Shown: positions 3,298-40,084 of the stretch, one piece after another
Layout: each line of letters opens with the position of its first letter
Position numbering within the stretch: the stretch's first letter is position 1
Source: Bugula neritina
Taxonomy: Eukaryota; Animalia; Bryozoa
Length of the DNA stretch: 64,000 nucleotides
NCBI GenBank assembly: GCA_964035545.1
Contig: OZ037766.1
Span: 29,824,640 to 29,888,639, forward strand
Reading direction: 5' to 3'
The notes under the pieces: generated by a model
What the model was told of the DNA's origin: nothing
What the model saw: the letters and a program-made list of their open reading frames with translations, nothing else
Database searches by the model: none
Position numbers and translations under genes: made by a program

Positions 3298-6200
3298 TCA
3301 AAACTGCCCAAACATAGATGTAACGAAATCTTTCATCTGTTCTTCTGGACATTTTTCTCTGAATGGAGGTTGATGTCTGGCAGGTTCCAGTTCCTCTAAC
3401 AGACAGAACCATTTTGGTTTGCCCAGAAATCGCACCTCAGCCACTTTGCCTACAAACATGCACACCTATTATAGCTAAACAGTGTAACGGATGTATCCCA
3501 ACTTTTTTATATAAATTATGGCAAGACCAGAATAAATAACTCTATAAAATACACTAAAATATACCAAAGTTATATAAACAAATTGAGCATCTTTTTTAGG
3601 AATAAGCAAAATTGTTTGATCTTGAAGTAATTGAGAAACTCTATACATAAATTTTATAAAATTAGCCTGCAGGCTAATTTTAGAGCTTGAAGCATTAGAA
3701 AAAATTCAAGCTTATTTTAACCAAATCTAACATCATTTTAAATTTAAAAATAAATGTTTATACTTTTTTTGAATTTTTTTCTTGATCCACAGTTATCGAT
3801 TTTTGGATGATTAAAAATAGAAAAGATTAGAAAGTCAATATTTCTGAAGTGAAACAAATAAAATGTCTATTTTAGCAAATCACATTTTAAAATCTTCAAA
3901 ACTAAAAACAGATGCACATAAAAAATAGCACATCTCCTTTTTGGGACGCAGAAATTAAAATACAACATAGTCACAGAATTACAACCATATAATATAGTCG
4001 ACCTTACTAAAGCTTCGACTATATATTTTAATATACAATATGTATTCTCACCTAAACTACCATATCTATTGGTGATGTCAACCAACATTCCAACATCCTT
4101 ATGAGTCACACCTCCCCAGTCTAGACGGGGTTTCTCCACAGACAACTTCACCTGTAAACCTAGCTCACTTTATCACAATACGACAAATTTTTGATTTAGT
4201 GATAGTTATTCTTTAAACAACTTTAAAAATAATATTTATAGATCAATGATGTGTAGATTTGCTATAAAAAATGTTAAAAATAAGTTATTGATAGTCAATG
4301 CAAGCTGAAAATAAATAAAAAAGTTGACATTTTAAAACCGTGCCATCGTACATCTCACCTGAACTTCATCGTCTAAATTTAGCCCTCTGACCAATTCCAA
4401 ATCTGTAGCCAATCCTCTCCAAGATTCATTTTCAGGAAACTCTACCGTTACCTTTTCTCTGCCTTGACTTCCCTTCACACTCCTCACTACACCAACACTG
4501 CTACCATTAATTCCATTCCAACCAGTGGAAGGTTCTGGAACACGTCTGGATGCTCTCACCTTGTCACCAACCTAAACACAATGGTAAACCAAACTTTGTT
4601 TTCTGTTAACTATAATTTTTTGCATGTCAGTTATACATATACAAGCCACTTATCATTATTTTGCTTGCAGGTGGTAATAACACTGAAGCTCACAATGGCA
4701 TGGAATTTTATACTATTATAGTTAGCTCAATGCCAGTCAATATTGTTCTATAGAGTACATAACAATATGAAATATTAAAATGTTAATGTTAATGTTAATA
4801 TTAAGGCTCATCTTCTACATAATAGTAATAAGGTAACTCAAAACCTCTGCTATGTTTACTGGGTGCCATGGTTAATAACAAATAATATTAATTAATTATA
4901 AACTACTAATAGTAAATAAATTAATTGAACAAAATAAGGAGCAAGCATTGTATCTAGAAAAAATAGAACAACTTTTATTAATGCAGCAGAATTACACAAA
5001 TTGACTGTATTAAATTAGATAGTAGCTACTAATTGGCTTATATGTTAATAGTCACATGATGCAAGTCTTTAAAGTCAAATTGAATGAGTTACGTAATTCT
5101 ATATGAATTTTAAAGCCAATAAGTATTTCATACAGCTTGTATCACCGCATAACATATTATCCAATAAAATAATGTTTTATTTACCTCAAAGCCACATCCC
5201 GGAACCAACTCTATCTCGTTGTAATTTCCACGCCAGTCTTTTAGATCTGGAAAGTCTACCATCACACTAACAGCTCTCTTTTGACCGATTCCCTTAGAAT
5301 GACTCAGACCCACGTTCTTCAAAACTCCATGACTAGATTTTGTCAAAAATAAAATAATTTTTCACTAATAACAGAAAATAATTATTCATAAATATATTTT
5401 TAATAGCCTTTTGTATGAAAATAAAGAGTAATAAGCGTTAAAAAAATTGCTTAAAACAAAGGAAACCAGAAATTGAATTTATACAGCTATAAGAATATAA
5501 ATTATCTATACATAATAATATACATTTGTTGTTTACTAAAATTATCAGTCATTGTAATAAATCAACAATTACATCATCTCCATTGGAGCAGTTTTGATAA
5601 AGTTTTAGTCTGCCTATAGTTAAAATGTTAAATCATACGCTAGCTATCTCTCCCCCAAATCTTGAGTTTGCATCATTGAACAAAGCTGGTAAAAACAATC
5701 TACTTTACCTGCCTTCTGCAGGTAGCTTGTTGGAGAAGGGATGAAATTCTCCATTTTCCCTTTTCTTCAGTCTAACTTTGCTTCCAATATAAGGAATGTT
5801 TTTGGCTTTCTCAACAGATCGAACTAAACTACCAGGAGGAGAGAGAAAAACATAATCTTCAGGAAAGATTACCCAAACCTGCAAGAGATTAGTGATAAAT
5901 ATTAACTATAGGTAATATAATTAGTATAGTCAAGTGCTTTGTGTTGGTTCATAAATCCTAAACGTAACTTAATTATAAAACTGAATATATTTCAAAAATT
6001 ATAAGACTTACTAAATCAGTAACATAGTACAAAATGATGTTCAGTTACATTTTTCTTAGTGTTGCTCTGTCAGTTATTTGATTTGCCCATTTATAAATGG
6101 CAATTGGTAAAACCCTCTTCCTTGCAGCTTGTAAAGCTAATTTTAAAATTTAAAAGCTTAAAATTTTACTCATGGTTTCATTTAATTGAATTGTTGTTTG

Positions 6201-9200
6201 GAGCCTTATTTAGTTTATTAATGTTTTGGATATGGAAGAGACTACTAATATAATTTAAGTAGGCAACATAGTTTATATATACTGCATAAAAAGTTGTCAT
6301 TTATCTGAATATTTCTATATATGCATTCTAATACAATCCTTTCCAGTACAATAATTGTAAAATATTTGTAAATATAGCACTGTCAATTTTCTTTCTTAAT
6401 TTTTTTTTATTATTTTCACTTCCATTCCATAGTAAAACCTTTATACTAACTTTGTGACATGTATGACCTAAGTTTGAAGTACACGAAGAAACAAGGAAAA
6501 AGACAATACTTACATACACATCCGACACGCCCCTGACGTCTGTTTCTGTCCCAGAGTACTCGATGATCTTACCACCAAATATACCAACACTTGAATATGT
6601 TACGTCAGAAGCTACCAGCTTCTTCTTGTATTCAGGAGTTAGAAACTCCCTGTTGAGTATCAGTCTCACACTATCGCCTTTCGTCATACTTCCGAACTCT
6701 CCTACTTCTACAGATGACAGGCTAAACATTTTCAAAAAACCGGTTATGCATGGAGCACTATAAGCAATTTTAAAACAAAATACTATTTGCATAATTGTTT
6801 AATCTAATATAAATGCTACGTCAGTAGTATTTTATCAAATTAAAAGTTTCAAGCAGAACAGATAATAAATAGTGGAGATAACTCCAGCATCTGAAATTGA
6901 TCAATAACAATCTGCTCAAATTTAAATTATGGCTAAGACTAAATTGCTTAAAAGGTTTTTGCACATGTGCAACTTCATATTTATGTATTTTAGTAAAACA
7001 CCGTTCACTTAAACAAAAGATCTATATAATTTATAAAAAATGTATTATTATTTTAATAGCAAATACTTTTAACTTCAATTCTGCAGAGATGCAATAGCTT
7101 GAAATTTACAAAAAATAAATCTATCAGAATTGGTTTACAAAAAAAATATTTTATGGCAGGTATAGAAGTTCAGTTATTACAAGGTCTATTAAACTTATTA
7201 GCATTGAGAATAGTATGTGAATTAGGATGCTAGCAATTCCTGTTCCATTCACGATTGCTGCATGCACCTATATGAGTATTGCACACAATTCAATATTTGG
7301 CCGAGTTTGAACACTAAAATCATTGTTGCACTATATAATAGCAAAACTTGAATAGTTTGTTCAACTTATGTAGTTTATATGGTGTGCATTTAAAAAATAA
7401 ATACAGAAAGCAAATGCAAAGATAAGAAAATCCTAATAGAATAACAAACTTACGAATTTTGAATAAAATCTTAAGAGGTATCATGTTCCATTTTTAGCCA
7501 TGTATGCTGGCTGCCCTGCATCTAATTTGCAGTTTTTTTATTATTAATTCAAATAACAAACTTATAGGCGCCTGCAAAGAAAAGCGATTGTTTTATAAGT
7601 TGTCTTTTTAGAATGCAAACGGTTATTTTTTATACCAGCCCTGATTGGTCACTCACCGGTCCAGGTTTTTGTGACACTCGCCATCACACTTCTTAAGTCA
7701 TCTAACTGCTTTTGAGCGTTAGCAAAAGCTGTTTGAGAACAGCCTTTGTTTGACAGCAACTTTTGCGCTTCAACCAATGCAGCTTTGGCTTTGCCAACTT
7801 TCTCAAAGCAGGGTTCATACAGGGATATCTTTTTGCTAAGTTCACTTGAAAATGCTCGAGCTCCGTTATCCACTGCTTCAATCTATAAAATTAAACTACT
7901 ATATTATTATCAATAAGTATTTTAGTAATATTAATATGATGAAAAAAAAAATATTATACGAAATATAAAGAGCAATAATTCAAGTCGACAATAAGTTTTC
8001 TTCTCTTAATTTCTACTACTTGATAGTCAACTCTTGATACATTTTCATAGTGACATGTACTGACAATTACATAAGTATTCATATTGTTGCTAATAAATTT
8101 TTTGTTTTATTATTTTGATTTATTTCTAGTTTTTTTAACTTTATAAAAACAAAATACCACACTGACATGCTTCATATGATAAACTTGCTGTCAGCATAAA
8201 TTAAAGCATAGTAATATTTTGTATGATGTATTCAGTTAAACTAAAAGAAACTTCTGCCAGAGTTCAGTAAAATTCAGTAAAATCCAGAAAATATGAAAAT
8301 GTCGGGCTTTAAAATATTAAGATAATTTGAAAAAGCATGATAGAAAGTTTCATACTTTTCATTATCACATGCATAAGGCTAGATCAAATATTATGATTTA
8401 TATACAGCATAAGCAATGCATAGGTAATACCTGTCAAAAGCAGCTGCAGAGTTTATTTTTGATAATTTTTAAAAATAAAAAAAAGTTCAAAAAATTTAAC
8501 CATAACTACAGAATTTACTAACAATTTAGAAATCAGCTGATAAATACCTTGTCAATGCTGCTTTGTTCGTCTCTCTTTTTATACTTTACAATAGCTTTTT
8601 TTGTGGCCTGGGTTTGTGCAGGTAGCTTTTCCAAAACCCCATTACATTTTTCTACCTGTTGCAACATGACAATACCATTGAACACATACATATATGCAGA
8701 TGTGCAACAAAATGAGATACAAATAGACATTTTAGTTACAAACTATATATAAGGTTTAAAAACAAGCAACTATAAAAGCAATAAAACATTTTTGGTGAAA
8801 GCAGAAATTAATAAATCTCATCACCTGAAATGAAAAATTAGTTTTTACTGGTACCCTAGCCTGTGGTGCAATTTATGCAAGTTAATTGTAATATAATGCA
8901 ATACAATATAATATATTAAAGCAATATATATTATAATAACACATCACAATATAATACAAAGAAATTTAAAATAAAAAAATATAATGTAGCATTATAATAT
9001 AAAGTAGTACAACATAATATAAGGCAATTCAATTTAATACTGTCTTTGATATAATAAAATAACTGCATACAATATTACTAACCATCGTTTTTACTTCTTC
9101 ATAGTTTGCTTCTGCCTTGTTCTTTACTTCATCAAAACTGTTACTCAGTTCCAAAAGATCGTCTTCAGAAATAAAAACACACACTATATTAAATGCCTTG

Positions 9201-10685
9201 AGTTTTTTACCCATTTATTGCAGAATTTCTTATATTTCTAATATTTATATAGAATTGAGGTAAACCAAGTAACACTGAATTGTTAAGCAGTTTAAAAGTT
9301 TCTTTTTTTTCTAGCTCTACTGTATTATTAAGGCTAAATTCTTGTGTAGAAAATTATCTCTTTATAGTTCTTATTACCCTCTGCATCTTTTTCATCAGTA
9401 TGAAGATTGCTGTCATTTTTACCATCAGCTCCCCCTGGTGTCAAAACTCTTTTTGACGGTTGCTGCATAGTTTTCTCTAAAATCATTCAATATAAATGTA
9501 TTAGACCTTAGACTTTACTCTGAAACACTCAAGTGTATTATACTTCAAAGTAAGGCAGCTGCTAATTCAGGTCTTACTACTAAGTCTATCAGAACTTCAT
9601 TACAGTTGGAGACCAGCACTAGATGTGCTATTTATATGATCTATATAGTCAATTTATTTACACTGTATTGTTGACAAGTGAAACATGTAAATAATGCAAT
9701 CATAATTAGCTGTTCTTTTTCTATAGTTTCAAAAACATTTCATTGTAAATTAGGTTAATATTTTTACATTTGAAAAATTTCTTAATTTTTTGATAGACAT
9801 ATGGGACAGCAATTTTTTCTACAAATATTTTTTGTAAAAGTTCTAAAAAAAACTATCATATAAAAAATACATCCCATGCATGCCTTTGTTTTCAGACATG
9901 ATTATTACTGTTTAGCAAGATGTACCTTTCTGTTTTGCTGACTCAGCAATATGCTCTGATGCTTCAGGGCTTTCAGAATCTGTCTTTTTAATGGTCAAAT
10001 CAAAGATCTGTTTAGTTAGCAGGCTGTCTGGAAGATTATCAAATCCTCCTTTGGGTACTGGATTTTCCTTCAAAAATATACCAGATAATTTTTGTGACTG
10101 CTTTAAGATAGCTGCAGACAAAACCTAAAAGTCGTGTGTTCGTGTGTTTGTGCGTGTGCGTGTGTGTGTGTGTTTGTGCGTGTGTGTGTTTGTGTGTGTG
10201 TTTGTGCGTGTGTGTGTGCGTGCATGTGTGAGTCAAGCAAAATTAGATTTAAATGTCTACAAAAACAGTTTCGAATTTTTTAATAGGTTGAGAGAAGTAT
10301 ATTATATAATGTAATAAAAGTCTAAACATGCATAGGTAAGCTACATGCAACTTGCCACTTTGCCACAAATTGCTTCAAGAGCTATAAACAAGAAATATAA
10401 ATTATATTATATTTATTCAAGAAAACAAAACACGGAACCAGAAATAGCAAAAGTTACAAGTATAAATATGCACAAAATATAATATAATACAAAATTTCAA
10501 AAGAGTCTTACCTTGTTACAAATAGTGCACTTAAATCGCTGACGTCTCACAGTCAGCTGTTTCACACAAGTCAGACATATTGTGTGCTGACAAGGCAGCG
10601 CTTTCAGAGTGTCAACTTCCTCCAGACAGACATTGCATTTGAGAAGATGTTTCAGGGAGTCCTCTATTGCCACTTTCTCTGCCAT
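3298..10685 (-). CDS. RING - coiled-coil - 4x HERC2/KEG-like SH3 repeat protein, paralog A1 (~601 aa), putative TRIM-like E3 ligase
   Basis: 12 exons: 10685-10512, 10067-9926, 9476-9378, 9162-9083, 8655-8548, 7882-7657, 6707-6514, 5878-5709, 5332-5185, 4571-4359, 4151-4052, 3449-3298. All are GT-AG with an open frame. C3HC4 RING CNVC..PCQHTICLTC..CTIC is followed by VPKGGFDNLP. Example repeat: VGDKVRASRRVPEPSTGWNGINGSSVGVV..VTVEFPENESWRGLATDLELV. Confidence 0.88.
10134..10231. repeat. (TG)n/(TGCG) microsatellite in A1 intron 1
   Basis: Imperfect GT dinucleotide run, seen directly. Confidence 0.9.
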
Positions 10686-11249
10686 CCTGATGTTTTTCTG
10701 CTAGTTAAGAAAGTGATATTTCCTTTCTCTTGTTCAATATCTCATACTTTTCTTGTCAGCATTTTAAGTCTTATGAAAATAGATTACCATAAAGCAACGT
10801 GTTTATAGTAAAGTTATTACTCTGGTGTATAATTTCAACATTTCACTATTACATATATTAGTCAAATTTTCATAATTGCTAAAACTAATAATAGCTTTTT
10901 AAAATTTTATTAAATTTTAAAGTTATTCATTACTACCCAGTACATTATAATTTATAAAATATTTATTAGCAATGGTAGGTACTGATGCTACGTCGCCATG
11001 TCACCCCCAAAACTTGTTTGATGTGGAGATGTAAATTTTTGCTTAGAATAAAATTGAATGATTAAGATAATAAAGCATGTTGATATTAATAATAATTATT
11101 TGTAATTTATAGCTTCAGCTTATAGTACTTGCAACTTATTTTTAATATTACAAAGTTTTGCTAGAACTAACCCTGTGTCGGGTAAAATTCATTGCATTTA
11201 TTACCTTTTTCTATAGAATAAGATCATTTAAAATTACCAGACTCTTCTA

Positions 11250-17800: not shown

Positions 17801-20690
17801 AAAAATAATTTTTTAAAATATATATAAATAGGAACTTCCATAAAACATCTTTATACATTAACTTAAGTTAAGGTATAAAGATGTTTTATGGAAGTTCCTA
17901 TTTATATTATTTATCATGTATATGATCTGTATTTCAATTTAGTGACACATATATATGTATGATCGTCATTTTGTTTTTACTATAGCTTTTCAATGATTCA
18001 TACTAGGTCAAGCTTTTTTAAACTAAATGTTTTTATAATATATCAAATTCTTTCTCGAAAAGGGCAGCAAAAATTCAAAAAACCAAATTTAATCAAAGGT
18101 TTTGTTGCTAATGAGAAATTATTAACATTACCAGCTAGATTAAACAATTGTAATAATTGCTGCATTGAAAATCATTGAATTAACTAATTTTCTCAAAATA
18201 TATTAGAAGAAATATAATTCTACAAAGAAGTCGTGTTGCTAGCTGTTCTAAAGCTAAAGGATATAACATACTGTCTGAAACGCCTCCATAAACCAAACGT
18301 CTGCTGACTTCAACTCATCTTTTATCTCTTTAGCCAACTTCTTAACTGCCTTTGCATCAACTCCTACAGTATTATAAAAGTACTAAGCATTTTTCTTTTT
18401 AGTTCTTATATATTACAATAATATATATATAATAGCTAGCAGATATATCACAAGAAATTAGAGCTCTGAAAACACTTACGGACTGGTTGTTCTACAGGCT
18501 TTGGTTTTGTCTCATCTTTCTTTAGCTCAGCTTCCTTACTTTTAGTTGTTTCTCCATCAGACTTGGTCGAGCTACTTCTCGGTGGAACAACTCCAAACCC
18601 GCCATTAGAAAGCAGCTCTTTGGCTGATGGAGGAGAAGCAGAAGGTTTTTTCTCGGCTTCGGATTTGATGCTCAGATCAGGAGATTTCTCAGCTGCTTAC
18701 AAGTATATAATAATTTATAACAATTATGTCAGCTTTAATAGGGATGTTTATAGTTTACTTTACCTATAAAGTTCAACTATAGTTTAGTTATTTAATGCAT
18801 TTATACAAAAATTGTATCCTTGAACAGGTTTACAGATTTCATACAGACAAACCACTGGTCCATATATTGTGAATGAATATATTGCAATTAATTGAGAACT
18901 AGCTAACTCTAACACCAACTGCTACAAAAAGCTACTGCTCAGAAGTTATTTGCTCCTGTATATTTGTGTTCATAGACATACAATATTATTATAAAGTTCT
19001 ATGTTTTACTTGTGAAAAAATGTCAAAACACTAACTGACAGTGAATTCTTGGCAGCGTTCAGTTAGCTGATGTGTGCTGCCTCCGGTATACTTGATATCA
19101 TCGAGTTGAACTTTGACATCTACTTTATTTATACACAAAACAGTCACCTGTTTTACTTGGCTGGTTAGAGTCTGTTCCCTGTACTTTATCTTCAGTTTCC
19201 TTACCTCCAGCATCAGAGAGCTTCTTGCTCTTTATCAGATCTTTGAGTTGCTTTCCCACCAGACTGTCTGGCAGTTTTCCAACTCCTCCATTGGGCATTG
19301 GGTGTTGCTGTTTTATAAAGATTATATTATAATATAATAAGGGGAAAATATGAAATGATATAGTACAGTATAATATTTTATGAAACGTATATCAGTATTA
19401 TAATTTTTATTAAATGTAGTAATAAACAGTTATGCAAAAGTAATCATCATTTGCAATTGCTTTTATTTCCAATACTATTAAAGTGTTGATTATAATGAAA
19501 TATTATAGCTTTTTAGTGTTGTTATATAGTTATATACATATTGCAACATAATTCTGCCCAGCTGCATGTCATTTCATAATAAGTAGTATATTATTTCAGT
19601 ATCATAGTGCTAACCCACTGTTGACTTTGGCAATGAACTTGAACACACAATATGGTTATATTATTCACATTAGGTTATATATAATTAGCTAGTAGTTACT
19701 ACTATAACTAGTATATTGCAAATGTACGCACAATATTTTAAGTGCTAGATACATCACAATGATACTATAAACTATACTAACCTTACTGCATGACAAAGAA
19801 AAGATATTGTTTATATAGGAATACTCATGTTTATCTCTATTTTCTATAAAAGTAACCTGATAAATATTGTATTTTAGTTTAGGAACAGGAGCTGACCAAA
19901 GTCTAAGCTATGTTATGGATTTCAGTCATGACAGGGTTATTGGCAATGTCAGGAAAAGCACCTGGCCATAATTGCAGTTATGGTGCTTTGAAAGTCGTTT
20001 GACTATGTTAGAGTAATGCAAAGAGGTTCTTAGCTGTTTTACCACAGGAATGGAGAGTTTAAGCTATTGTGAAATTTAACAGATGACATGTGCTACCTGT
20101 TCTATGCCAATGTTTATATAGCTCTTCAACTTTGATGTGTATACATTTTATGCACGATTTACGTGATTAATAAAAACTATGACCTTCAACTGAGGGAATT
20201 ATCACACTATGAACTTTATTCACTATAATATTATACACAAATATTTGCTGTCCGTCACACTTTAATAATCTAGGCTATTATTGGAAAGTTTGAGGTATGT
20301 TTTCTTTTTTATTCGAAACAAAGAGTTTTCCCAACTTTGATAAACATTAGGAGTTATCCCCTCTACATTAACTTGAATCTGGCACTCAATGAGCTATGTA
20401 TATAAATTTACTAAGAAGCAAGTAGTGTGAGAAGAATACGATTAAAAGCACTAGCTATTATACTTCACATAATATACTACACATAAAATAGCAACACACT
20501 TATACTGACTAACCTTTTTGCAAACACTGCAAGTAAACTTTCTCTTAACAACATTCAGTTGTTTGGCACAAGGTAAACAGACAGTGTGTTGGCATGGCAA
20601 CACCTTCAACTCATCTACTTCCTGTTTACATATGTTACAGTTGAGTAGACTTCGAAGTGACTCTTCTATTGCATCCTGGTTAGAAGCCAT
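12489..20690 (-). CDS. RING - coiled-coil - 4x HERC2/KEG-like repeat protein, paralog B1 (~677 aa)
   Basis: 12 exons: 20690-20514, 19307-19157, 18695-18480, 18363-18272, 17493-17383, 17013-16776, 16349-16153, 15211-15045, 14343-14211, 13657-13445, 13324-13225, 12727-12489. Intron phases match A1. RING is CNIC..PCQHTVCLPC..CSVC. Example repeat: IGDKVKIKPSVTKPHFSWNGI..KGTL..VIVKFPENHDWKGLYSEIEL. Confidence 0.88.
13691..13906 (-). mobile_element. tRNA-derived SINE with ~20-bp target-site duplication in B1 intron 9
   Basis: A-box-like TGGTCCAGAGG, B-box-like GGCTTCGAACC, internal AGGAAGAGCATCCAG and a (GAGT)n tail. Flanking direct repeats at 13671-13690 and 13907-13926 have 2 mismatches. The element is absent from the paralogous B2 intron. 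Confidence 0.8.
14717..14850. repeat. (TA)n microsatellite
   Basis: Long interrupted TA run. Confidence 0.95.
15726..16146. mobile_element. Fold-back MITE (~420 bp, arms ~205 bp)
   Basis: Termini GGGTCA...TGACCC. The arms are reverse complements along their length, e.g. TTTACTTAATTTAGTACACACTGGAAAT / ATTTCCAGTGTGTACTAAATTAAGTAAA. ACTT flanks both ends as a possible 4-bp TSD. Absent from B2. Confidence 0.85.
17822..17907. repeat. 86-bp spacerless palindrome (1 mismatch) in B1 intron 4
   Basis: ATATAAATAGGAACTTCCATAAAACATCTTTATAC-A-TTAACTT|AAGTTAA-G-GTATAAAGATGTTTTATGGAAGTTCCTATTTATAT. Confidence 0.95.
19940..19976 (+). mobile_element. Degenerate fragment of the same SINE family
   Basis: TGGCAATGTCAGGAAAAGCACCTGGCCATAATTGC resembles TGATGATGTTAGGAAGAGCATCCAGTCATAATTGC of the 13.7-kb SINE. 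Confidence 0.5.
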
Positions 20691-24181: not shown

Positions 24182-27100
24182 ATGGCAGAGAATGTGCCGA
24201 TAGAGGACTCCCTGAAACATCTCCTCAAATGCAATGTCTGTCTGGAACAGGTTGACACCCTGAAAGCGCTGCCTTGTCAGCACACAATATGTCTGACTTG
24301 TGTGAAGCAGCTGACTGTGAGACGTCAGCGATTCAAGTGCACTATTTGCAAAAAAGTAAGCTTTACATTATTTCATTTGCAGAACTGTATTCATTTATTT
24401 TTTATTTTTAAGATTTCAGTTTATTTACCCACTGTAGTTTTGAGCAGTTTATTATAACCTCTCGATTTTGTTGAAAATTAAAGTTTTCGTCGTATTTAAG
24501 ATTTTAGTTGATAATTTCATAACTGTTTGTGTTGCTTATTTGTGATTTACAAGCTATATCACATATGATTGGGCAATAACAAACCAGTTTACTGATTTAC
24601 TTTAGGAAAATCCAGTACCTGAAGGCGGGTTTGAAACTCTCCCAGACAGTTTACTAACTAAACAGATCTCTGAATTAATCCAAAAGAAAAGTTCAGGAAG
24701 TTTTGAAGAATTGCAAACTCAATCAAGTCTGAAGAAAGAAGGTACTGGGAACATCTACAACTATATTGCTGTGGTGTGCTGTGACCTTTCACTTTATATA
24801 GTAACAATTATAACTGCTGAATAAACTGATAAATTAACTATGAAAAAAATTAATTTTAAGAAGACATTTTGTAGCAAACTTTGTAAACAAGCCATATATT
24901 GATAGATCTATGTTGTTGGAACAATCTATGAATTGATAAGAAACAATAATTTATCTTTTCATAATGCAATAATCATATAATTTATTGTCAATGCATATTT
25001 TGTACCTACCAAGAAATAATCAAAATTATTCCTTCAAGGGTATTATTAAATTATGCCCCCTGTGTGCTACAGCTCAAGATACTAAAAAAGCTATGCTGAG
25101 TATTTCACCACCAGATGGAGCTGCTGAGGAAGACAATGAAGAAAACGGTTTGCTTAAGGTTATGCTGGATGATGACGAAGACGTAAAAGGTATTTACTTG
25201 CAGAGATATATTATATGTAAAGTTTGCGGTGTGTACTGCGCTCTATGGACTATCATAATGTCTTAAATATAAATAACACTGTAATATTCCTTTGGTAGAC
25301 AATTATTTATTGTATATATAGTATATTATAAACGCCATGTTGTATATAATTTAATGTAAAATAATAATACAACATTTACATTGCATTAAAATATATAATT
25401 ATATTTAAATATATAAAAATCATTTCAACACAAAATATTATATTAGTTCTGCATGAAATTAAACTTGAGTTTAAAACAAATGTGCACAGCTTGAATTATA
25501 TATGACAAATATTTGTTTATATGTAAAGTTGAATACAAATTGTCACTCTTCCTTTTCTAACCAAATCTGTTGATAGATACATGATGATGTTTTATAATAA
25601 TTTAGGGATTGACTTTTGGAAACTGCAAGGCAACTTGGATAATGAAAAGCGCAAAGCAGAAAGGAGTTATGAAAATGCAAAAGAAATGGTTAGTATCACA
25701 CTAATAGGTGGTATAGCTCCAAGAGAAACAAATAGATTTACAGCTGTTGTTTCTTGTACAAATCTAAAACTTACCAATATGACTAAAACTATGCAACAGT
25801 GTTCAGTTAAAAATGTTTAATAGCATGCATTGCTTTAGCTATATATAAGTACTAAAACTCTTAAAGCATTTTGAGTTTTCATCAGTTTTTGAATTTTTTT
25901 TATTTATTCACATTCTTTTATTGAAAATATTGTTTTATTTTAAGGCTATGTGCTAACTGTTACTTGTTGTATATCATCAGGTAATTGGCTAATGAAAACT
26001 TTGAATATGATTGCTTTTATTGGTCATCTTTTTGCACAACCAAGTAATTAGGTTTTTATTACAAAAGTGATGAGTGAGCCTTTTACACATCTGCTGTAAC
26101 CTTTAGGTCTGATATGCTGGTTATTTGTGAAAGACCATTTACTTAACTTACTGTTTACATGATTATACACATCAAATTAAGCTGCAATATGAACAATTAG
26201 CTGCTAGGAGGCTGAGTTTATAGCAGCTTTTGATATTTCTTTAGCATGCTTTCATGCAGTTACATAAAACACTTTTGTTTTAATTGTGGAGAAAATTGCA
26301 AATATTTTTATAGTACTCAGAAATAATGCAACAAATCTGAATTTTAAATAGAGCTAAAACTAAATTTTTACCAGAGTAATGGTTAAATTTGATTTGAGCA
26401 GGTAAAGAAATGTACTGAAACTTTGGAGAAGTTACCTGCACAAACTGAGGCTACAAAAGAAGCTATTACTCAGTATAAGAAGAAAGAGACACTTCAGTTT
26501 CAACAGAAGGTCTGTTTGCCATTCTTTTTTTTATTAGTTACTTTTTATGTCAGCAGGATTTCCTGCTGCCGGTGCTCATGTGATTGCTTGTTTAATATTG
26601 CTACTAAAAACCTAGTAGTTTTTACTGTATGTATGAGTTTTTTTAGTTCATTAATAAACATTTACAATTTTATTATATAAAACATGGTGCGATTCTCTTT
26701 GGTTTTGGTCGATGATAAGCAAATCTAAATCATAACACATTTATAAACAGTTGCCACGTAACCTTTCCAGATTGATGCCGTTGATTCAGCAGTGCGAGAC
26801 ATTTCAGCTAATCTTCAGAAGAAAATGTCAACTTACCAGCCTTACCTTGAAAAGGTTCGAAATGCTATAGACGTAGCAACTCAATCAGAGAAACTGCTGT
26901 CAGCTAAGAAGTGTCCTACTCATAGTCTCTTTGCTGACGCTCAGAGGCATTTGGCTGACTTGAAGAGAGTAATGGCAGACGCTGCCAAGAACTGGAGTGG
27001 TGAGTCATAGTCAGCCATATATACTGGAGAACGCTAAACACTATGCCTTTAATATCTTCATTAGGTTTACTGATAGTCGTATAATAAAGGGTATCTTATA

Positions 27101-32523: not shown

Positions 32524-33097
32524 TAATGGGAAGTATACGCATTGCATTACAATAGCATATTCCCTAATCAAAGGAGCTGCACATAAGACTAGTAGCAAGT
32601 AAAGTATACAAGTTGTGTTAATCAAAGATGCAACAATTTGCTGAGGTACGTTATTATGCTATTGTAATCTTTGTATTATGTTCTTATATACATTATGTTC
32701 TTATATACAAAACAAATATGGTTAAAACTGTAACTATGTTTAGTTTTAATGCTTATAGCTATAAGTACATGATGTCTTTTTAAACAGAGTGCTATAGTAT
32801 ACAACTGTTATCAAGTGCTATGACTGCTATAGAGGCCTGAGTAGAACGTATCTTGGTACGAAAGATTGAAATCAGTAATGTACTTGTAAATCGAAATCTC
32901 TTTATTATGTAAAGTGAATCTCAATAACAATTTTGTGTTTTAGACCACACAATGTGATACATGATTTTAGTAAGTCTATTTACTAACAAAAAATACTTTA
33001 ATGATGCTAGTATACTCTTTATATGTTATAGGTAGTGATAGTAGGTTAGTAGTAGCAAACCATAGCTTACAAGACAATAGCTTCTAACCAAACTGCA

Positions 33098-34311
33098 ATG
33101 GAGAAATCACTCCGAAGTCTACTCAACTGTAACATATGTAAACAGGAAGTAGATGAGTTAAAGGTGTTGCCATGCCAGCACACCGTCTGTTTACCTTGTG
33201 CCAAACAACTGAATGTTGTTAAGAGAAAATTTACTTGCAGTATTTGCAAAAAGGTTAGTAGTTATTTAATATTATAAACACAAATCTAGTAAAACAGTAT
33301 TATGTTTTCTATTTTATATAGGAATAATTTAATCTATCTGCTTTTTTATTCTTTTGCTATTTAGAGTTCTTTTTATAAATTGAAAATCAAAAATACAAAA
33401 TACAAATTTATATGAACCCTTGTTTCTAATTATTCATCTAAGGTTTGATTTAATTGTTATGCAAAGGTTTGAGCTCTGAGCTATATTTTAATCAGTAGAA
33501 TTTTTACTGTAAATAGGAACACCCGATGCCTAATGGAGGTGTTGGCAATTTGCCAGATAGTTTGGTAGGAAAACAGCTCAAAGACCTCGTCAAAAGTGAA
33601 CAACTCCCAGATATTAGTGGTAAAAGTGATAACGAGACATCAGAGGTTCAGCAGCTTGTAGCTAGTAAGTATATATATAGCATATATACTCAAGGATGAA
33701 TATTGGTTGAATTGGTACACATTTGCTGGTTGAAGTAAAATAACCTGTTTCTCCAGCTTCTCCAGTTACTTAAATCATATGAGTATAATTAAAATGCTTT
33801 GATACAATTATATAAGCTAAGTTTTCAGGTTTTTTGCTTCAAAATTAAATCTACTGGTATAAAATATAGAAAAACTCAGCAGACAGCTTTTTCTGCAATA
33901 ACTTACATAAATTGTAAATTAAAGTATGAACCATTATCGCACAAATTGAAATTCATATAAAAGCAGTTTTAATGAGCTGAAAACTGGTAATCAGTCAAAA
34001 TCACTAATTACTCTCTAAAAAATACCAAGCTGTTTATGTTGAATGGATTATTTTCACATTTTTATAAAAAGATGGAGCAAGTTCTATGTTAGAGAGAGGT
34101 GGTAAGGAGAAGGGTGATGCAGTTGTAAGGTCTCCTTCCAGTAACGTGACTAAAATTCTGGCTGGTGGTGGATTTGGCTCTGTTCCAGCTAAAGGACGTA
34201 GAGGTGATGCAACCAAGACATCTCCAAGCATAGCAACTCAAACTATGAGTGTGAAAGTCAAGAAAAAGCCAGTACAGTCTCAGCCACAGTCTAACAGTGA
34301 GGGCAATATTA

Positions 34312-34388
<77 letters not shown>

Positions 34389-37300
34389 TACAAGTATATA
34401 CATTTATAATAATATTTGTTTTAGCTATTTGCCTTATTTACTTAGTCACTGATGCTCCAATTCCCTCTCTCATTCATTAACTCACTCACTCCATCATGGG
34501 CAGAATTTTTCAATGTATAAACATATATATATGCGACCTTCAAAAAGTCATCCATCTTGAATAGTTTTGGCTTTTTTTAAATTTCACAGAAGTTGATGCT
34601 AAAGCAGCCCAAAACTTGGTGAAAGAAATGAAAGAAGAGTTGGAGACAGCGAGCAGCTGGTTTGTTGAAGCCTGTCGCAGAGTAAGTCTCTTATAAACAA
34701 GTTTTCCTTATTAAAAGCAGTCTGGGTTTAACAATTTATATAAAGCTATCTTAGCAGTCATTATATATTTGACTTACAGCTTGTTAAAAATCACATAGGA
34801 AAGGCAATGTTACACTATAAGTGTTTTTCTATATTATTTCGCAATTTGTTGGTGGCAGATAACTCTATGTAATTGTAAATTGTATTAAAAGTTGAAAACT
34901 TGCATGAGTAACGCTATAATATGATTGCTTATATTGATGAGTCTTTAAAATTATTCTGCGATATTCGGCTTTTGCCTAGGTGATATACATTATTAAGAGC
35001 AAATAGTTATTTATAACACGTTGGCCTTATAGCTAGCTTTAAGCATTCCTATACTTGAAGTATGCTACATGTACATAGTTCGGGTATTCATGTTCACTAT
35101 TTTTTTCTCCTGATGCCTTCATGGGTCTGAATTTACTATATTTTTGCATTCTGTACTTTATCTACATGCATAATGAGTAGTGACAGTGATAAAAATTCAC
35201 TATTGTACCAGTTTTATGTTGAGTATGGGCTTAAAATTGTTCTTAAATATCATTTATCTTATATAATATAGTATTCTCAATTCAAGCTTCAATGAAAAGA
35301 ATATATATACACTTTGAGATAATCAAATACTCTTTGAAGAATTTGCCTTTAAGGTTTCAACATAATATTCATACCTAATAAATTGTATTGTTGTTGTGTT
35401 TAATACATGCAAGCAACATATGTTGTACCATGCAGGTACTGTTTCGATTCTCATGATAAAAATTTACATAAAGTGAAGAATAACTCTTAATATTTTATAA
35501 AGGTGATATAGAATAGCTCCAATTTGTATGTATTTATGTAGATGGGGTGGTACAAAGAGTCCCTAGACAACATGAGAAACCATGCTACAAGTGTCAAGAA
35601 AGTCTACCAGGACCACCAAAAGACTCTAAAAAAGCCCTTCAGTGCAAAGGTGAAAGCACTTTCATTTAATTAATTGGTGAAGCCATGAATTTAGTAACAT
35701 TACGCATCATGCACAGTTTAATTTATTTAATGATACAAATTAGAAAATTGTATCAATTTATTGTGCTGATCATAAAGTAGCAAGTTAAATGTCAGAACGT
35801 GACATAATGCTTTATCTATAGCTAAAAGATTTAGACTCTGCTTTAACCGAAAGAACCGAAGATAGTACTGCAAAATTGGGTGTGCTGGAACCTTGCGTGG
35901 CTAAAATGGAGAATGTGATTAAGTCGTTACCTGAGTGTAGCAGCTTAAGCTGGAGATCACGTCGGAGAGATATCCCGCCTGACGAGATCAGAGAAACGAA
36001 AGCTAATTTTGAGAAACTAGAGACTATGAATAAAGAAGTCGAGGCTATACCTATTGGTAGGAGTTAAATTTATAAATTTCAATTTTTGTAGTTGGCGAGC
36101 TGTGTATGTACATTACATTTCATTTATCCTATATTAATCCGTCTATATCTCTCACCTTCAAACTTTTTGAGGGTTTCATGCTCAAAAGATTTGGTTTCAT
36201 AATAACTTTTGTGCAATCATATCATGAAAATATTTGGAGTTCCTCATCACTTGTTGTTTCTAGTCTGCTCTGAAGCCTGTGGTATTATAAGACTAATAGT
36301 AATTATAGCTGACTTTCATTACGTGCTATTCTTAGCTTTTCTTAACCACTAAGATAACTTGAATGTTCAAACTTTAAACTAACAAGTCTGCTCAGTGATT
36401 AGAGAGTTTCAGGGATGTTTTAATGAAAAGAAATAAAGAAATAATAAAGGATGAAAAAACAATAATGATAACTAACAAACAAATAATAGATAATAATAAA
36501 TAATGTGTAGGCGTTGGCAATTTTGTTAAAATTAGATTATATAGTGTTTGAATGAATAAATATTTTACTATTATGTAATATATGTGGAACCACCTGTTTA
36601 CCTCAACCGACTTCATATAATATAGTAAAATTCTAAATTGTAATCTTACCATATAGACTGTGGAGCACAGATTTATTTTAGCACAGTTGATAGATGAAGG
36701 TAAGCATTATAGCCTAGCTGTTGCATGGACTATTTGGTAGAATTTACGCAAATTTCTTTTGAAGTTTTTTAATTTAACTTAAATGGCTTCTCTGGCTTTA
36801 TTTAGACTTGGACTACAGTGAATACATTGAAGTAGGGGACTACGTACGTCTTACAACGCTGGAAGAAGCAGAGACTATAATGCCTAGTTATTATCGTGGA
36901 TATAAAGTCAGTTCAGATGCCCGTATTGAGAATATTCTGAACAGTAAAGTTACTCACACCAGTGTTGGTAGATATCTGAGAGAGACTTACTCTGGAAATA
37001 AAAGAGTAAGTTATATTTACATGTTTTTGTTAAGATTCTGGCAAAACACTTCTCATGTATTTTGCTCAAAGCTATAGCTTGTGCATAACATCTGTTCAAA
37101 ATGTTAAAACAAAGGGTTGTATAAATTGTAATAAAAACATTTTTATAATATGAATGTTATATTATGAATATATTCATTATATATTTTTTTATTTTAAAAC
37201 TTAATATAGAGATTAAATGCTAAAGAATTGTGATCTTTTTAACTCTGATTTATTATTTGTAATTGTTTCTGCGAGTTGATGTTAGTATTTATATATTATT

Positions 37301-40084
37301 ATCAGTAATATAAGTTGCACAATGACTTTTAGTATACAATATATAGCTCTCAAATTTCAAATTTTGTTTACAGAAAAAATTTTCAGTCAATTGGCATTAA
37401 TTTAATTTAAAGCTAGTTTACTGCATATTCTCCCCACAGGTTCTAATGGCTGTATTCCCTGAGCAGATTGACTGGAAGGGACCAGAAGGGAGTTTAGTTA
37501 AGTGTCAGAAGAAAGTTAGTCTTCCTTATATTGGAGACAAAGTTAAAATAAAACCTTCCGTCACCAAACCACACTTCTCATGGGATGGCATCAGACAAAA
37601 GAGATGGTAATGTTCATAAATGTGTTCATGGTACCGTAATAAGTAAAGTTGTGATTTCAAAATTCTGCTTAATAATCAAAAATTAGGTAGTTTCTTATAT
37701 GAATTTCAATTTTATTAGCCAATTCTTATGCTACACGAAAACTTAAAACTACTTGCAAAATATGTGATTAGATTATGCGAAGCTTGAATTTTTTTTAAGT
37801 TTTGCCATGCAGAAAATCCTTTTCTTTGGCCCAAAATAAAATTTTCAAACGTCTATGGCTTTAAATAGGTGAAATTAAGCTCAAACTATCTATGGTTTCT
37901 TGACTCTCAAAGTAAAAACTGGGAAACCTATTTAGATTAAAATGAGTTTTGTTACATATAGACAGATACAAGTGCATTTGTAAATGATGCAATTTACTAA
38001 AATACATTTTTATTGGTCTGCATTGTTTGGGAAATATTTGAAATATATGTGTTTACAACCACATGTTTATCTGCAGACTACAGCTGTAGTTTCAGAGAAG
38101 TGCTATATTTTGTGAAGAATTAAATTAGCTGTTACGAAAAGAAGCAATCACTTAAATCTTACTTTGGATGATTTTGAACTGTGTTTTAATTTGAGTAAAT
38201 AAATCTATTTAGTAAAGGCACTTTGGAAAGCATCAAATCAGAAGGACCTGCTAATGACCTGATGGTGATTGTAAACTTTCCTGAGAATCATGACTGGAAA
38301 GGTCTGTACAGTGAGATAGAGCTTGCTCCTTCTTGTGGACTGGAGGTAGGAAGCACAATCTTTTGGAAGTATATATTATAAGAAAGTTGCCATGTTATTT
38401 TTAGTAGTAATAAAATTGCATATAAATATTTTGCAAAAACATGCGTAGGCTAGTATAATTTCCATTATTGTTATGATAACTCTTAATTTGCAATAAAATA
38501 TCATACATAAACATCAACACTAAACAAAGAATACATTATAACAGATAACTTATTTTCCTAAAGCTAGTGCATTTATTAGTTTAAAGTTATCTACATGCGT
38601 ATTAAAACCATACATAAAAATGTTTTTATAATTTTTATTAAACTTTCTCAGCAGAGCAAAACTATTTTTAAGGATAATTTATAAGCAAGCATTATAGCTG
38701 TTTTGTTTTGTAACTAACATCTTTTTATGTATATAGCTACATATAGATTACATTATTATATACTGCTGTAGGAGTATATATTACAATACTGTATACAGAT
38801 ATAAGAGTATATATATTACACCAAATAGGTTGGAGATGAAGTGAGAGTAAACAGTAACATATCCGAACCATCCAGAGGCTGGGCCGGAGTAAATGGAAGT
38901 AGCGTTGGAAAAATCACGGCTATTGAAGGAGCTGAAGGTCAAGAAGAGGTCACGGTTGATTTCCCAGAATGCAAAGACTGGGTGGGGTTAGCTACTGAGC
39001 TAGAAATGTCTAGAGAACCTATTAAAGGGGAGAAAGTGCAGGTAAAACTCAACACTAGATATTGTTATGATTTGGTTTTCCGATATATTTTTTATAGTTC
39101 TTATGACAGTTCAATAAAAATATAAAGCTATAAGTATATTATGCTGACACATAAAGCTGACACATATCTATTATGCTGACAGGTGAAACTGACACATACT
39201 TATTATACTGACAGGTGAAACTGTCACATATATATTATGCTGACACGTAAAACTGACACATATTATACTGACAGGTGAAACTGACACATGTATACTATGC
39301 TGACACATAAAACTGACACATATATATTATACTGACAGGTGAAACTGACACATATTCATTATGCTGACAGGTGAAACTGATACATATATACTATGCTGAC
39401 ACATAAAACTGACACATATATATTATGCTGACAGGTGAAACTGACACATATATATTATGCTGCCACATTAAACTGATACATGTATATTATGCTGACAGGT
39501 GAAACTGATACATATATATTATGCTGACAGGTGAAACTGACTGTAGAAACACCCAAACTCGGATGGGGAGGAGCAACTCATGAGGATGTTGGAGAGCTCG
39601 TTGAGATAGTTGAGAGCTCCAAAGGTTCATGTAAAATAATGCAAATAAATAACATGTCGAAAGTAAAAAAATGTTTTTTTTCCATGAAGTTGTACAAAGT
39701 ATGCAGTGATTTTTTTATCAACTTCAGATAACTTTATTTGCACATGCAAATATTTTTAAAATTTTTGTTAATAATCTTAACAGTATGTAATGTAATTAAA
39801 CCAGAAATCTCATTCAATGTGAGTTCAGCTAATAGTTGTGTTTATAAGGTCGAGTCGGAAATGTGAAGTTTGCTGGAAAACCTGAACGTCCATTTCAAAT
39901 TGAAGATTTGGAACTTGCCCGGTATCAAGCACCAAGCTATGACGAGAGATCGCAAGTTGTCCTTCCTTTTTGGCAAATGATGCAACTCGTGAACCCTGGG
40001 TTTGGCTTATTTGGAGCACAAAACCTCTTTTATGATGAAAGTTATGACTGTTATGACGACGGTTATGATGACTATTACGATTAA
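33098..40084 (+). CDS. RING - coiled-coil - 4x HERC2/KEG-like repeat protein, paralog B2 (~670 aa)
   Basis: 12 exons: 33098-33253, 33517-33664, 34072-34296, 34590-34681, 35542-35649, 35822-36056, 36806-37005, 37440-37606, 38213-38345, 38829-39041, 39531-39630, 39849-40084. The frame is open and the gene is an exon-by-exon paralog of B1. The start ATG lies 7 codons downstream of the B1 start position. Confidence 0.87.
34305..34390. repeat. (TA)n microsatellite
   Basis: TA run just after B2 exon 3. Confidence 0.95.
39135..39541 (+). repeat. ~32-bp minisatellite (13 units) derived from the B2 intron10/exon11 splice acceptor
   Basis: Unit TATATTATGCTGACAG|GTGAAACTGACACATA. Eight units keep CAG|GTG, the last being the true acceptor; five have CAC in place of CAG. 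B1 has a single copy. Confidence 0.92.

Follow-up and report, generated by a model that had tools for sequence, protein, structure and literature searches.

The analysed stretch of DNA, a window of 64,000 nucleotides from Bugula neritina, harbors four intact paralogous genes, A1, B1, A2, and B2 (Table 1), with A1 and B1 being encoded by the minus strand and A2 and B2 by the plus strand. Comparison of the paralogues revealed 12 conserved coding blocks per gene, and the four RING exons as well as the four exons that each encode a full repeat were found at the positions given in the preliminary description of this locus. Splice sites were picked to fit the intron phases proposed there (0,1,1,0,0,1,0,2,0,0,1), which are common to all four genes. 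In the predicted models, GT-AG borders are present at 44 of 44 introns, the exon junctions fall into identical alignment columns, and each gene yields a single uninterrupted frame that is open across 1.8–2.0 kb of coding sequence, whereby the outermost ends of the cluster lie at 3298 and 40084. Thus, the four intact 12-exon genes with identical phases that had been described were recovered. Independent support for the junctions comes from repeats R2 and R4, which were significant against a profile of repeat R3 only after the two or three exons of each had been joined in the predicted phases. The least certain part of the models is the borders of exon 3, which were set by splice-site scores only. 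In B2, the codon that matches the B1 ATG is ATA (33077-33079), and the first Met is located seven codons further on.

Table 1. Genes and encoded features of the cluster, in window coordinates; the last exon of each gene includes the stop codon.
Feature	Position	Strand	Remarks
Gene A1, 12 coding exons, 601 aa	3298..10685	-	GT-AG at all 11 introns, no internal stop
A1 exons 1-12	10512-10685, 9926-10067, 9378-9476, 9083-9162, 8548-8655, 7657-7882, 6514-6707, 5709-5878, 5185-5332, 4359-4571, 4052-4151, 3298-3449	-	
A1 exon 1, C3HC4 RING	10512..10685	-	Short helix-forming stretch ahead; Pfam and PDB profile matches
A1 exon 2, RING tail	9926..10067	-	NPVPKGGFDNLPDSLL..
A1 exons 4-6, helical region, 138 aa	7657..9162	-	Composition, hydrophobic period
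A1 exons 7-12, four SH3_15/HERC2-type barrels and C-terminal tail	3298..6707	-	
A1 exon 10, entire repeat R3	4359..4571	-	
Gene B1, 12 coding exons, 658 aa	12489..20690	-	
B1 exons 1-12	20514-20690, 19205-19307, 18480-18692, 18272-18363, 17383-17493, 16776-17013, 16153-16343, 15045-15211, 14211-14343, 13445-13657, 13225-13324, 12489-12727	-	
B1 exon 1, C3HC4 RING finger	20514..20690	-	
B1 RING-tail exon	19205-19307	-	
B1 helical region	16776-18363	-	
B1 barrel array	12489-16343	-	
B1 R3 exon	13445-13657	-	
Gene A2, 12 coding exons, 607 aa	24182..30589	+	
A2 exons 1-12	24182-24355, 24606-24741, 25073-25189, 25606-25688, 26402-26509, 26771-26999, 27639-27823, 27972-28129, 28800-28941, 29106-29318, 29729-29828, 30411-30589	+	
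A2 exon 1, C3HC4 RING finger	24182..24355	+	
A2 RING-tail exon	24606-24741	+	
A2 helical region	25606-26999	+	
A2 barrel array	27639-30589	+	
A2 R3 exon	29106-29318	+	Exon 10, identical to database ORF P0013
Gene B2, 12 coding exons, 648 aa	33098..40084	+	Length counted from first Met
B2 exons 1-12	33098-33253, 33517-33619, 34093-34296, 34590-34681, 35542-35649, 35822-36056, 36806-37005, 37440-37606, 38213-38345, 38829-39041, 39531-39630, 39849-40084	+	
B2 exon 1, C3HC4 RING finger	33098..33253	+	
B2 RING-tail exon	33517-33619	+	
B2 helical region	34590-36056	+	
B2 barrel array	36806-40084	+	
B2 R3 exon	38829-39041	+	

The RING exon of A1 scored above the cut-off for the Pfam families zf-RING_5, zf-RING_UBOX, zf-C3HC4_3, and zf-C3HC4. 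A profile of the window RING exons found its best PDB matches consistently in TRIM56 (1.5e-6), TRIM32, and TRIM2, with the RINGs of RNF168, RNF8, and RBBP6 scoring slightly lower. The tail motif (V/M)PxGG..LP is present in all four genes, and for the orthologue from Watersipora subatra the alignment with TRIM56 and TRIM2 extends through this tail, CxxC-x3-(I/V)P-x-G-x4-L, and the next helix. TRIM2 was also the sole RING among the best 50 Foldseek matches of the orthologue model (TMt 0.76–0.79, rmsd 2.1–2.2 A). These data agree with the TRIM2/3/56-like RING that had been suggested for the genes. At the position after the last RING Cys, where TRIM2 and TRIM56 have Arg, A1 has Asn and the other three proteins have Lys, which makes the catalytic strength of the RING uncertain. 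As had been claimed, the family differs from TRIM2/3/32/56 in that there is no B-box: of the 149 B-box matches listed for the genome, none is located within the window or at the four further family loci, none was found in the orthologues P0160 and P0157, and the four genes contain no C/H-rich open frame other than the RING exon. Furthermore, the C-terminal position that is taken by NHL/filamin in TRIM2/3/32/56 is occupied by four SH3_15 barrels.

All four genes possess a low-complexity exon 3, and the helical region encoded by exons 4–6 contains few Pro and Gly residues, 32–37% charged residues, and a hydrophobic period of 3.4–3.6. For the RING and the helix, structure and dimerisation were predicted with a Watersipora type-C orthologue, which is 25–45% identical to the window exons. 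In the AF2 model of P0160, a 106-residue helix is followed by a 32-residue helix, and the model is TRIM-like in its succession of helix, RING, helix, long helix, and return helix. In a homodimer test, the orthologue helix reached 0.55 vs. 0.00 for the best control. Of the 30 proteins whose solved structure is a pair of one chain, 21 attain this mark, as compared with none of the 23 solved as single chains. The runs showed a contact agreement of at least 68% and a partner pLDDT of at least 70, and their contacts (e.g., 245-223, 205-266, 234-234) specify an antiparallel register, as in the TRIM coiled coil. The antiparallel coiled coil of the preliminary description is thus predicted for the Watersipora orthologue, and the window proteins may dimerise in vivo in the same way. 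A search with Pfam TRIM_CC at a threshold as lenient as E<=10 gave no match to the orthologues' helical region, so that the name TRIM depends on the RING and the geometry only.

In this context, it might be that the proteins are not TRIM-derived, and that an ordinary RING, an unrelated coiled coil, and an SH3_15 array were united independently, with the TRIM likeness being convergent. Besides the missing B-box, the lack of a TRIM_CC match, and the small score difference to RNF168, RNF8, and RBBP6, this would fit the nearest other RING genes of the B. neritina genome, which are intronless, RING-only, and without B-box, as well as the unrelated protist proteins P0009 and P0026, which also combine an N-terminal RING with SH3_15 repeats. 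We nevertheless consider such a convergence unlikely, given the consistent TRIM ranking of the PDB matches, the alignment through the post-RING tail and helix, the TRIM-like order of the P0160 model, and the predicted antiparallel dimer. If it were true, the biochemical function would be unchanged, but the label “B-box-less TRIM” would be wrong.

In order of the A1 exons, repeat R1 is encoded by exons 7 and 8, R2 by exons 8 and 9, R3 by exon 10, and R4 by exons 10–12. The R3 profile search yielded four repeats per protein, with R1 being weak (iE 1e-5 to 0.7). Against Pfam SH3_15, the single-exon repeats gave E=0.0015–0.0077 (16.9–19.2 bits, under the cut-off of 24), and the orthologue P0160 is above this cut-off with 49.5 bits. 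The AF2 model of R3 consists of five strands (pLDDT 91). The assignment of four HERC2/KEG-type repeats was borne out, as the repeat matched the PDB entry of the HERC2 domain located after CPH (9L8Y) with E=1e-11 and its fold in Foldseek with TM 0.77–0.78, rmsd 1.7–1.8 A, and 37% identity, and the repeat profile matched plant KEEP ON GOING (KEG, P0030) with E=5.8e-26. The nearest relative outside the family is the HERC2 INBD exon of the B. neritina genome itself. In HERC2, the INBD (PDB 9L8Y, 9L93) is present as a single copy in a giant HECT ligase and acts together with CPH, whereas in the window proteins it follows the RING as a tandem array of four. The known partner of the INBD, [2Fe-2S]-NCOA4, is bound via K2655-G2659, K2677, Q2686, and T2690 (PMC12318192). 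In the 9L8Y alignment, these contact residues fall on a loop and a strand that are conserved in the window repeats: the HERC2 loop PKYKWG, which contacts the ligand, corresponds to EP..GW.G of the family, and the HERC2 strand FPQQSHWTG to FPE..W.G. KEG, likewise a RING E3, carries an array of this repeat type at its C-terminus; however, in this 1625-aa protein Pfam finds RING, Pkinase, Ank, and SH3_15, and it has more repeats, no long coiled coil, and a kinase domain and ankyrin repeats that the window genes lack. The REP of Mind bomb 1 (PDB 4TSE, 4XI6) belongs to the same Pfam family, SH3_15, and the whole-protein model of the orthologue matched 4XI6 and 4TSE with E=2e-6 to 8e-5; MIB1 was absent from the best 50 fold matches of a single window repeat. 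MIB1 differs in having MIB/HERC2 and ZZ domains as well as ankyrin repeats, in the number of REP repeats (two), and in the C-terminal location of its RINGs.

The KEG repeats mediate protein interactions and have also been credited with the ability to dimerise KEG (PMC3697954), and the HERC2 domain recognises a [2Fe-2S]-loaded partner and no plain peptide (PMC12318192). It could therefore also be that the barrels are no substrate receptor but serve in self-association, auto-regulation, or the sensing of ligand- or cofactor-bound partners, and that the proteins are mainly scaffolds or weak ligases, as the replaced TRIM2/TRIM56 Arg would allow. We regard this as rather improbable, since constraint on the genes is strongest in the RING (dN/dS 0.05–0.17 in the A1/A2 and B1/B2 comparisons), as expected if catalysis matters. 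The repeats of KEG and MIB1 recruit protein partners to the ligase, which also counts against a non-receptor role. The HERC2 domain, too, brings a protein partner to its ligase (PMC12318192).

The proteins are 59% (A1/A2) and 68% (B1/B2) identical within and 33–36% identical between A and B, which confirms the suggested two old subfamilies, each of them duplicated. The A1/A2 and B1/B2 pairs show an overall dN/dS of 0.27 and 0.32, respectively, and the linker and helical region are fast-evolving (dN 0.4–0.9). At least eight RING-plus-repeat loci are present in the B. neritina genome. Orthologues named “uncharacterized protein” occur in Watersipora subatra RefSeq; the family models are XP_067944212.1/XP_067944213.1, XP_067945164.1, XP_067944359.1, XP_067945348.1, XP_067945349.1, XP_067945351.1, and P0160 (609 aa), the latter being the orthologue of the B. 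neritina gene at C3:23400323-23405951. They share the RING with a PxPNGG..LP tail, the linker, the helix, the four repeats, and an EP.RY..P.Y tail, but show no 1:1 orthology with the A and B genes of the window, as each species has its own duplications. In several of the Watersipora models, two tandem genes appear to have been merged into one. That some or all copies are unexpressed or decaying duplicates, or that the 12-exon models are partly wrong, chiefly at exon 3 and the B2 start, would fit the ATG lost in B2, the exon 3 borders, and the rapid linker and helix evolution, but is highly improbable in view of the open frames, the GT-AG borders, the dN/dS of about 0.3, the restoration of R2 and R4 by the predicted joins only, and the Watersipora RefSeq models, in which RING, helix, and repeats are joined in identical order. 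We infer that the genes are expressed.

The preliminary description had regarded the architecture as unknown among animals, which does not hold, since the Watersipora orthologues exist and teleost RefSeq already contains proteins that combine SH3_15 repeats with RING, B-box, and TRIM_CC, named “E3 ubiquitin-protein ligase KEG-like” or “TRIM39-like”. Teleost examples are XP_017538314.2 and XP_017538316.1 (Pygocentrus nattereri), XP_036437817.1 (Colossoma macropomum), and KAL2080923.1 (Coilia grayii). As in the window proteins, RING and coiled coil are followed by a C-terminal SH3_15 array, which strongly matches the window repeat profile (E=1e-52 to 1e-69). However, the teleost proteins retain B-boxes (one or two) as well as a canonical TRIM_CC, carry three to seven repeats, and lack the PxPxGG..LP tail, and they probably represent a separate, independent fusion. 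No paper on a bryozoan RING-SH3_15 family was found in the literature. The term “candidate new system” was thus overstated for a domain reshuffle within RING E3 ligases.

Overall, we consider it likely that the four genes constitute a tandem cluster of a family for which only bryozoan members are known so far, and which encodes dimeric RING E3-ligase-like proteins composed of a TRIM-type RING, a helical region, and four SH3_15 barrels. Such a protein would consist of a C3HC4 RING of the TRIM2/3/32/56 kind between short helices, a disordered low-complexity linker, a helical region of about 140 aa, four tandem five-stranded SH3_15 beta-barrels of the domain type shared by the HERC2 INBD, the KEG HERC2-like repeats, and the Mind bomb REP, and a short variable tail, with no B-box anywhere. 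If TRIMs, HERC2, KEG, and MIB1 are taken as a guide, the helical region would form an antiparallel homodimer with one RING at either end, whereby the RINGs may recruit a ubiquitin-charged E2 and act as ligases, and the barrel array may bind the target via the face of the EP..GW.G loop and the FPE..W.G strand. The family would have originated by domain shuffling, in which a TRIM-type RING and coiled coil were joined to an SH3_15 array, and, under moderate purifying selection, would have evolved through tandem duplications specific to each lineage. The B. neritina genes are a lineage-specific reshuffling of known parts and no new kind of system, and this bryozoan-restricted variant is real and probably functional.

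The window is AT-rich (approximately 31% G+C) and lies at C2:29824640-29888639 of the 216-Mb Bugula neritina assembly. A six-frame scan of this region yielded four C3HC4 RING exons, one in each of the loci A1, B1, A2, and B2, as well as four exons with one complete repeat in each. Comparison of the translated open frames of the four loci revealed that twelve coding blocks are conserved per locus and that the introns have diverged. For the predicted 12-exon models, donor and acceptor sites were selected to suit the intron phases proposed in the preliminary description, and the ends of exon 3, which is of low complexity, were set by splice-site scores alone. Each predicted model has a single uninterrupted frame (A1, 601 aa; A2, 607 aa; B1, 658 aa; B2, 648 aa), all 44 predicted introns are of the GT-AG type, the phases are 0,1,1,0,0,1,0,2,0,0,1 in all four genes, and the junction columns coincide in the alignment of the paralogues. 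The outermost coding bases of the cluster are 3298 and 40084, in agreement with the extent first described for it. With a profile derived from the third repeat, R3, four repeats were detected per locally joined model. R2 and R4 only reach significance after joining of their exons according to the predicted phases (exons 8+9, iE 1e-17, and exons 10-12, iE 5e-17, respectively), which provides internal support for the junctions. The dN/dS ratios of the young pairs amount to 0.27 (A1/A2) and 0.32 (B1/B2), with values of 0.05-0.17 for the RING. In exon 1 of B2 (33077-33100) an ATA is found at the position of the B1 start ATG, and the first methionine follows seven codons downstream, before the RING. 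Database ORFs that closely resemble parts of the window genes, among them P0013 and P0015, consist of one exon piece each and cross no junction. Judged by their sequence, the four genes are real, intact, and constrained, and open frames, splice sites, aligned junctions, and repeats restored by the joins together confirm a cluster of four genes with 12 predicted exons each and shared phases. The joined models were used for the frame check, the paralogue alignment, dN/dS, the local repeat count, and the tree, while single exons or RefSeq proteins of the bryozoan Watersipora subatra served as queries for Pfam, PDB, Atlas, folding, and database comparisons.

Positions of RING exons in the window (window numbering) and of related loci in the Bugula neritina assembly (contig numbering)
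Feature	Position	Strand	Detected by or content
C3HC4 RING exon, A1	10500-10700	-	six-frame scan
C3HC4 RING exon, B1	20454-20723	-	six-frame scan
C3HC4 RING exon, A2	24173-24454	+	six-frame scan
C3HC4 RING exon, B2	33056-33274	+	six-frame scan
Family members outside the window, two in tandem	C3:32.29-32.31 Mb		RING + R3 profiles
Family member outside the window	C3:23.40 Mb		RING + R3 profiles
Family member outside the window	C1:2.99 Mb		RING + R3 profiles
L016, HERC2 orthologue	C7:11281000-11290999	-	Cul7/CPH, SH3_15 (INBD), ZZ, APC10/DOC, and RCC1 exons
L017, more distant RING gene family	C2:5930000-5939999	+	weak R3-like repeats, R3 profile E=4e-5 and 5e-4
L013, two intronless ORFs (508 and 545 aa)	C3:3749000-3755500	-	N-terminal RING

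Several other features were seen in the window. A collagen exon at its left edge (1030-2031, plus strand) has a 333-aa Gly-X-Y frame (Pfam Collagen, E=6e-48). The cluster is adjoined by a divergent, intronless GPCR-like ORF of 330 aa (43020-44012, minus strand), which matches the rhodopsin-family model 7tm_1 weakly (29.2 bits, just below the cut-off of 30.5). Also on the minus strand, there are an exon with a partial XendoU (poly-U-specific endoribonuclease) domain (52644-53081, E=3e-21) and a KLHL-like gene with a Kelch-repeat exon (59058-59390, Kelch_1 E=1e-21) and a second Kelch-like exon recognized by its similar translation (61703-61978). Intron 3 of B2 contains a TA-rich simple repeat (approximately 34300-34450), which reads YIYIYI.

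The N-terminal part of the proteins had been compared to TRIM2/3/56, and this assignment is borne out. The exon-1 translations exceed the cut-off of the Pfam RING models, and when these exons were compared to the PDB as one profile, TRIM56 (1.5e-6), TRIM32, and TRIM2 were the best matches, with RNF8 and RNF168 behind. As expected of an active RING E3 ligase, all eight zinc ligands of the C3HC4 motif are invariant in the four exons, which begin the motif with CN(V/I)C, and a hydrophobic residue for E2 contact is present behind the first cysteine pair in all of them. The RING tail, (V/M)PxGG..LPDSL, is encoded by exon 2. RING and tail are contiguous in the Watersipora orthologues, for which HMMER gives an alignment with TRIM56, TRIM2, and TRIM3 that extends from the RING through the tail into the next helix. 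TRIM2 and TRIM56 have an arginine at the “linchpin” position behind the last RING cysteine, which is expected to be basic in an active RING E3, whereas this residue is asparagine in A1 and lysine in A2, B1, and B2. The closest RING relatives in the Bugula genome outside the family are the two ORFs of locus L013, which have no Pfam domain besides the RING; they were considered as a clue to a TRIM origin, but being intronless and RING-only they are uninformative.

TRIM (RBCC) proteins carry one or two B-box zinc fingers after the RING. In contrast, the window family is without a B-box, although its N-terminal RING is of the TRIM kind. Of the 149 B-box (PF00643) matches listed for the genome, none falls within the window or any of the other four family loci, and Pfam found none in the Watersipora orthologues P0160 and P0157. 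Apart from the RING exon, the genes contain no open frame rich in cysteine and histidine, and the only other hit was a CA microsatellite located in the first intron of A1. This CA/TG repeat extends over approximately 10130-10290 and, in several frames, translates into runs of His/Thr or Cys/Val. The absence of a B-box thus holds for the window, for the other family loci among the listed matches, and for the orthologues. As the B-box is lacking, the predicted proteins are by definition not TRIMs. Elsewhere in the genome, dozens of near-alike RING and B-box exons sit in long tandem arrays on C8 (0.2-1.8, 4.2-7.3, and 9.3-10.4 Mb) and C6 (9.2-11.6 Mb), many of them scoring identically, which suggests that TRIM-like genes have recently expanded there on a large scale.

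The C-terminal repeats had been likened to the HERC2 segment after the CPH domain and to the repeats of the plant ligase KEG, and both comparisons turned out to be right. The only convincing PDB match of the R3 exon profile was the C-terminal half of HERC2 residues 2540-2700 (9L8Y, E=1e-11). An AlphaFold2 (AF2) model of window exon 10 (pLDDT 91.3) has five strands, as expected for an SH3-like barrel, and its best Foldseek matches are the HERC2 structures 9L93 and 9L8Y (TM 0.77-0.78, rmsd 1.7-1.8 Å, 37% identity), with Tudor, KOW, and SH3-like barrels ranking far below. Against Pfam SH3_15, the Mind bomb SH3 repeat family, to which the “HERC2-like repeats” of KEG and the HERC2 INBD also belong, scores of 16.9-19.2 bits (E=0.0015-0.0077) were obtained for the R3 exons of the four genes, which is under the gathering cut-off of 24 bits; the HERC2 INBD exon of Bugula itself is likewise sub-threshold (22.3 bits), and the Watersipora orthologue P0160 is above the cut-off with 49.5 bits. 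Pfam yielded nothing meaningful for the partial-repeat, tail, and helical exons. An exhaustive HMMER search collected 458 representative proteins, including plant KEG (P0030; RING-kinase-ankyrin-SH3_15, E=5.8e-26) as well as fish and protist SH3_15 proteins matched down to E=1e-69. The repeats of KEG have been described as modules for protein interaction (PMC3697954). The HERC2 domain was named INBD in 2025 and binds [2Fe-2S]-loaded NCOA4, which it contacts through K2655-G2659, K2677, Q2686, and T2690 (PMC12318192). In the 9L8Y profile alignment these contact residues align with the conserved EP..GW.G loop and FPE..W.G strand of the family, from which we infer that this face may serve as partner-binding surface.

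Between the RING tail and the barrels, exons 4-6 encode a helical region of 138-147 residues, which is poor in proline and glycine, 32-37% charged, and has a hydrophobic period of 3.4-3.6. The Pfam TRIM_CC model matched neither eight orthologue helical segments at E<=10 nor window exon 6. The AF2 model of P0160 (609 aa, mean pLDDT 77.5) begins with a helix, the RING, a helix, and a disordered linker, which are followed by a helix of 106 residues, a return helix of 32 residues, and four five-stranded barrels. For P0160 residues 172-322 a homodimer was predicted with a score of 0.55, compared to 0.00 for the best control; among proteins with solved structures, 21 of 30 homodimers attained this mark, compared to 0 of 23 single-chain proteins. 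The dimer runs had a contact agreement of at least 68% and a partner pLDDT of at least 70, and contacts 245-223, 205-266, and 234-234 correspond to an antiparallel register. The prediction for this Watersipora orthologue supports, without proving, a TRIM-like antiparallel pairing. In a Foldseek search with the whole 609-aa model, multi-KOW SPT5 chains dominate, and no TRIM coiled-coil structure is among the best 50 matches. The antiparallel coiled coil that had been expected is predicted for the orthologue, with no TRIM_CC sequence match.

With RING and R3 profiles, eight loci were identified in the Bugula genome in which the repeats are preceded by a RING exon at a distance of 3-8 kb. The member at C3:23.40 Mb is the orthologue of P0160; most of its exons are 64-88% identical to those of P0160, and the exon pattern is the same. 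A whole-genome scan with Pfam SH3_15 reported only the canonical loci at C2:15.97 Mb and C6:11.40 Mb and missed the family, so that it cannot be used for counting members. Outside the family, the closest relative is the INBD exon of Bugula's own HERC2 (L016), which is identified by the neighboring Cul7/CPH, ZZ, APC10/DOC, and RCC1 exons and has the domain order of human HERC2. The division into two subfamilies, each of them duplicated, could be corroborated: A1 and A2 share 59% and B1 and B2 68% identity, compared to 33-36% between A and B, and the repeat-module tree groups A1 with A2 and B1 with B2 (support 100/99). Watersipora sequences form clades of their own, so that the duplications are lineage-specific; the deeper branching of the window A and B genes relative to these clades is without resolution in this tree, in which Bugula is represented by the four window genes, and P0011, P0019, and P0024 appear without their first-half modules. 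These three Watersipora models each contain two successive helix-plus-repeat modules, the first with R1-R2 only, and look like either annotation fusions of two tandem family genes or real tandem-module proteins. Full-length relatives were only found in Watersipora subatra. When the repeat module of Watersipora was used as query in a word-index search, only Watersipora proteins were returned, followed by plant KEG and one protist. Single-exon ORFs with 60-70% identity to R3 occur in other public assemblies and probably stem from other bryozoans. The ESM Atlas feature search gave only leads below 0.9, namely to mollusc, rotifer, and nematode clusters with RING/B-box content.

The domain reading of the preliminary description was largely correct, but its view that such an architecture is unknown in animals fails, since teleost proteins from Pygocentrus, Colossoma, Serrasalmus, Metynnis, and Coilia with a RING, a B-box, TRIM_CC, and 3-7 SH3_15 repeats are already present in RefSeq/GenBank, where they are named “E3 ubiquitin-protein ligase KEG-like” or “TRIM39-like.” Protists have N-terminal RINGs with SH3_15 arrays, and SH3_15 is also paired with C-terminal RINGs, SPRY, calpain, and caspase domains. 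An orthologue of KEG can be ruled out, because KEG combines its RING and HERC2-like repeats with a protein kinase and ankyrin repeats (as seen in P0030), whereas no kinase or ankyrin coding block is present in the 12 exons and neither Pkinase nor Ank was found in the orthologues. A Mind bomb orthologue was dismissed as well: MIB1/2 consist of MIB/HERC2, ZZ, REP, and ankyrin domains with C-terminal RINGs, whereas here the RING is N-terminal, MIB_HERC2, ZZ, and Ank have no Pfam match in window exons or orthologues, and the canonical SH3_15 loci lie elsewhere. The family is distinguished by a set of features that is so far restricted to bryozoans: RING and tail of the TRIM2/56 type, exactly four barrels, no B-box, and a helix missed by TRIM_CC. 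No published description of the family was found in the literature on HERC2-like repeats, TRIM, SH3_15, and KEG-like proteins. On present sequence evidence the proteins would best be filed as RING-coiled-coil ligases with an SH3_15 recognition array.

By analogy, they would act as dimeric RING E3 ligases with a barrel array as receptor. No new mechanism is revealed by the finding. TRIM-like RING ligases gain a C-terminal recognition module in the form of a HERC2-INBD/KEG/MIB-type SH3_15 barrel array, and this module has been joined to RING ligases several times, namely in plant KEG, protists, teleost TRIMs, and bryozoans. A more far-reaching and rather unlikely idea is that the family comprises fast-duplicating, TRIM-derived, B-box-less dimeric ligases, the barrels of which would form a diversifying recognition array, for instance for non-self, stress-marked, or, in the manner of HERC2, cofactor-loaded (such as Fe-S) proteins. 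If this were true, they would represent an undescribed C-terminal class of TRIM-like ligases and a natural multi-copy form of a domain for which the only solved ligand complex dates from 2025. The practical gain is a better annotation of bryozoan genomes, in which the orthologues are still labeled “uncharacterized protein.” Since the single HERC2 barrel reads a [2Fe-2S]-loaded partner, this small, intron-mapped family with four barrels per protein could be a convenient system for asking what such a barrel recognizes in general.
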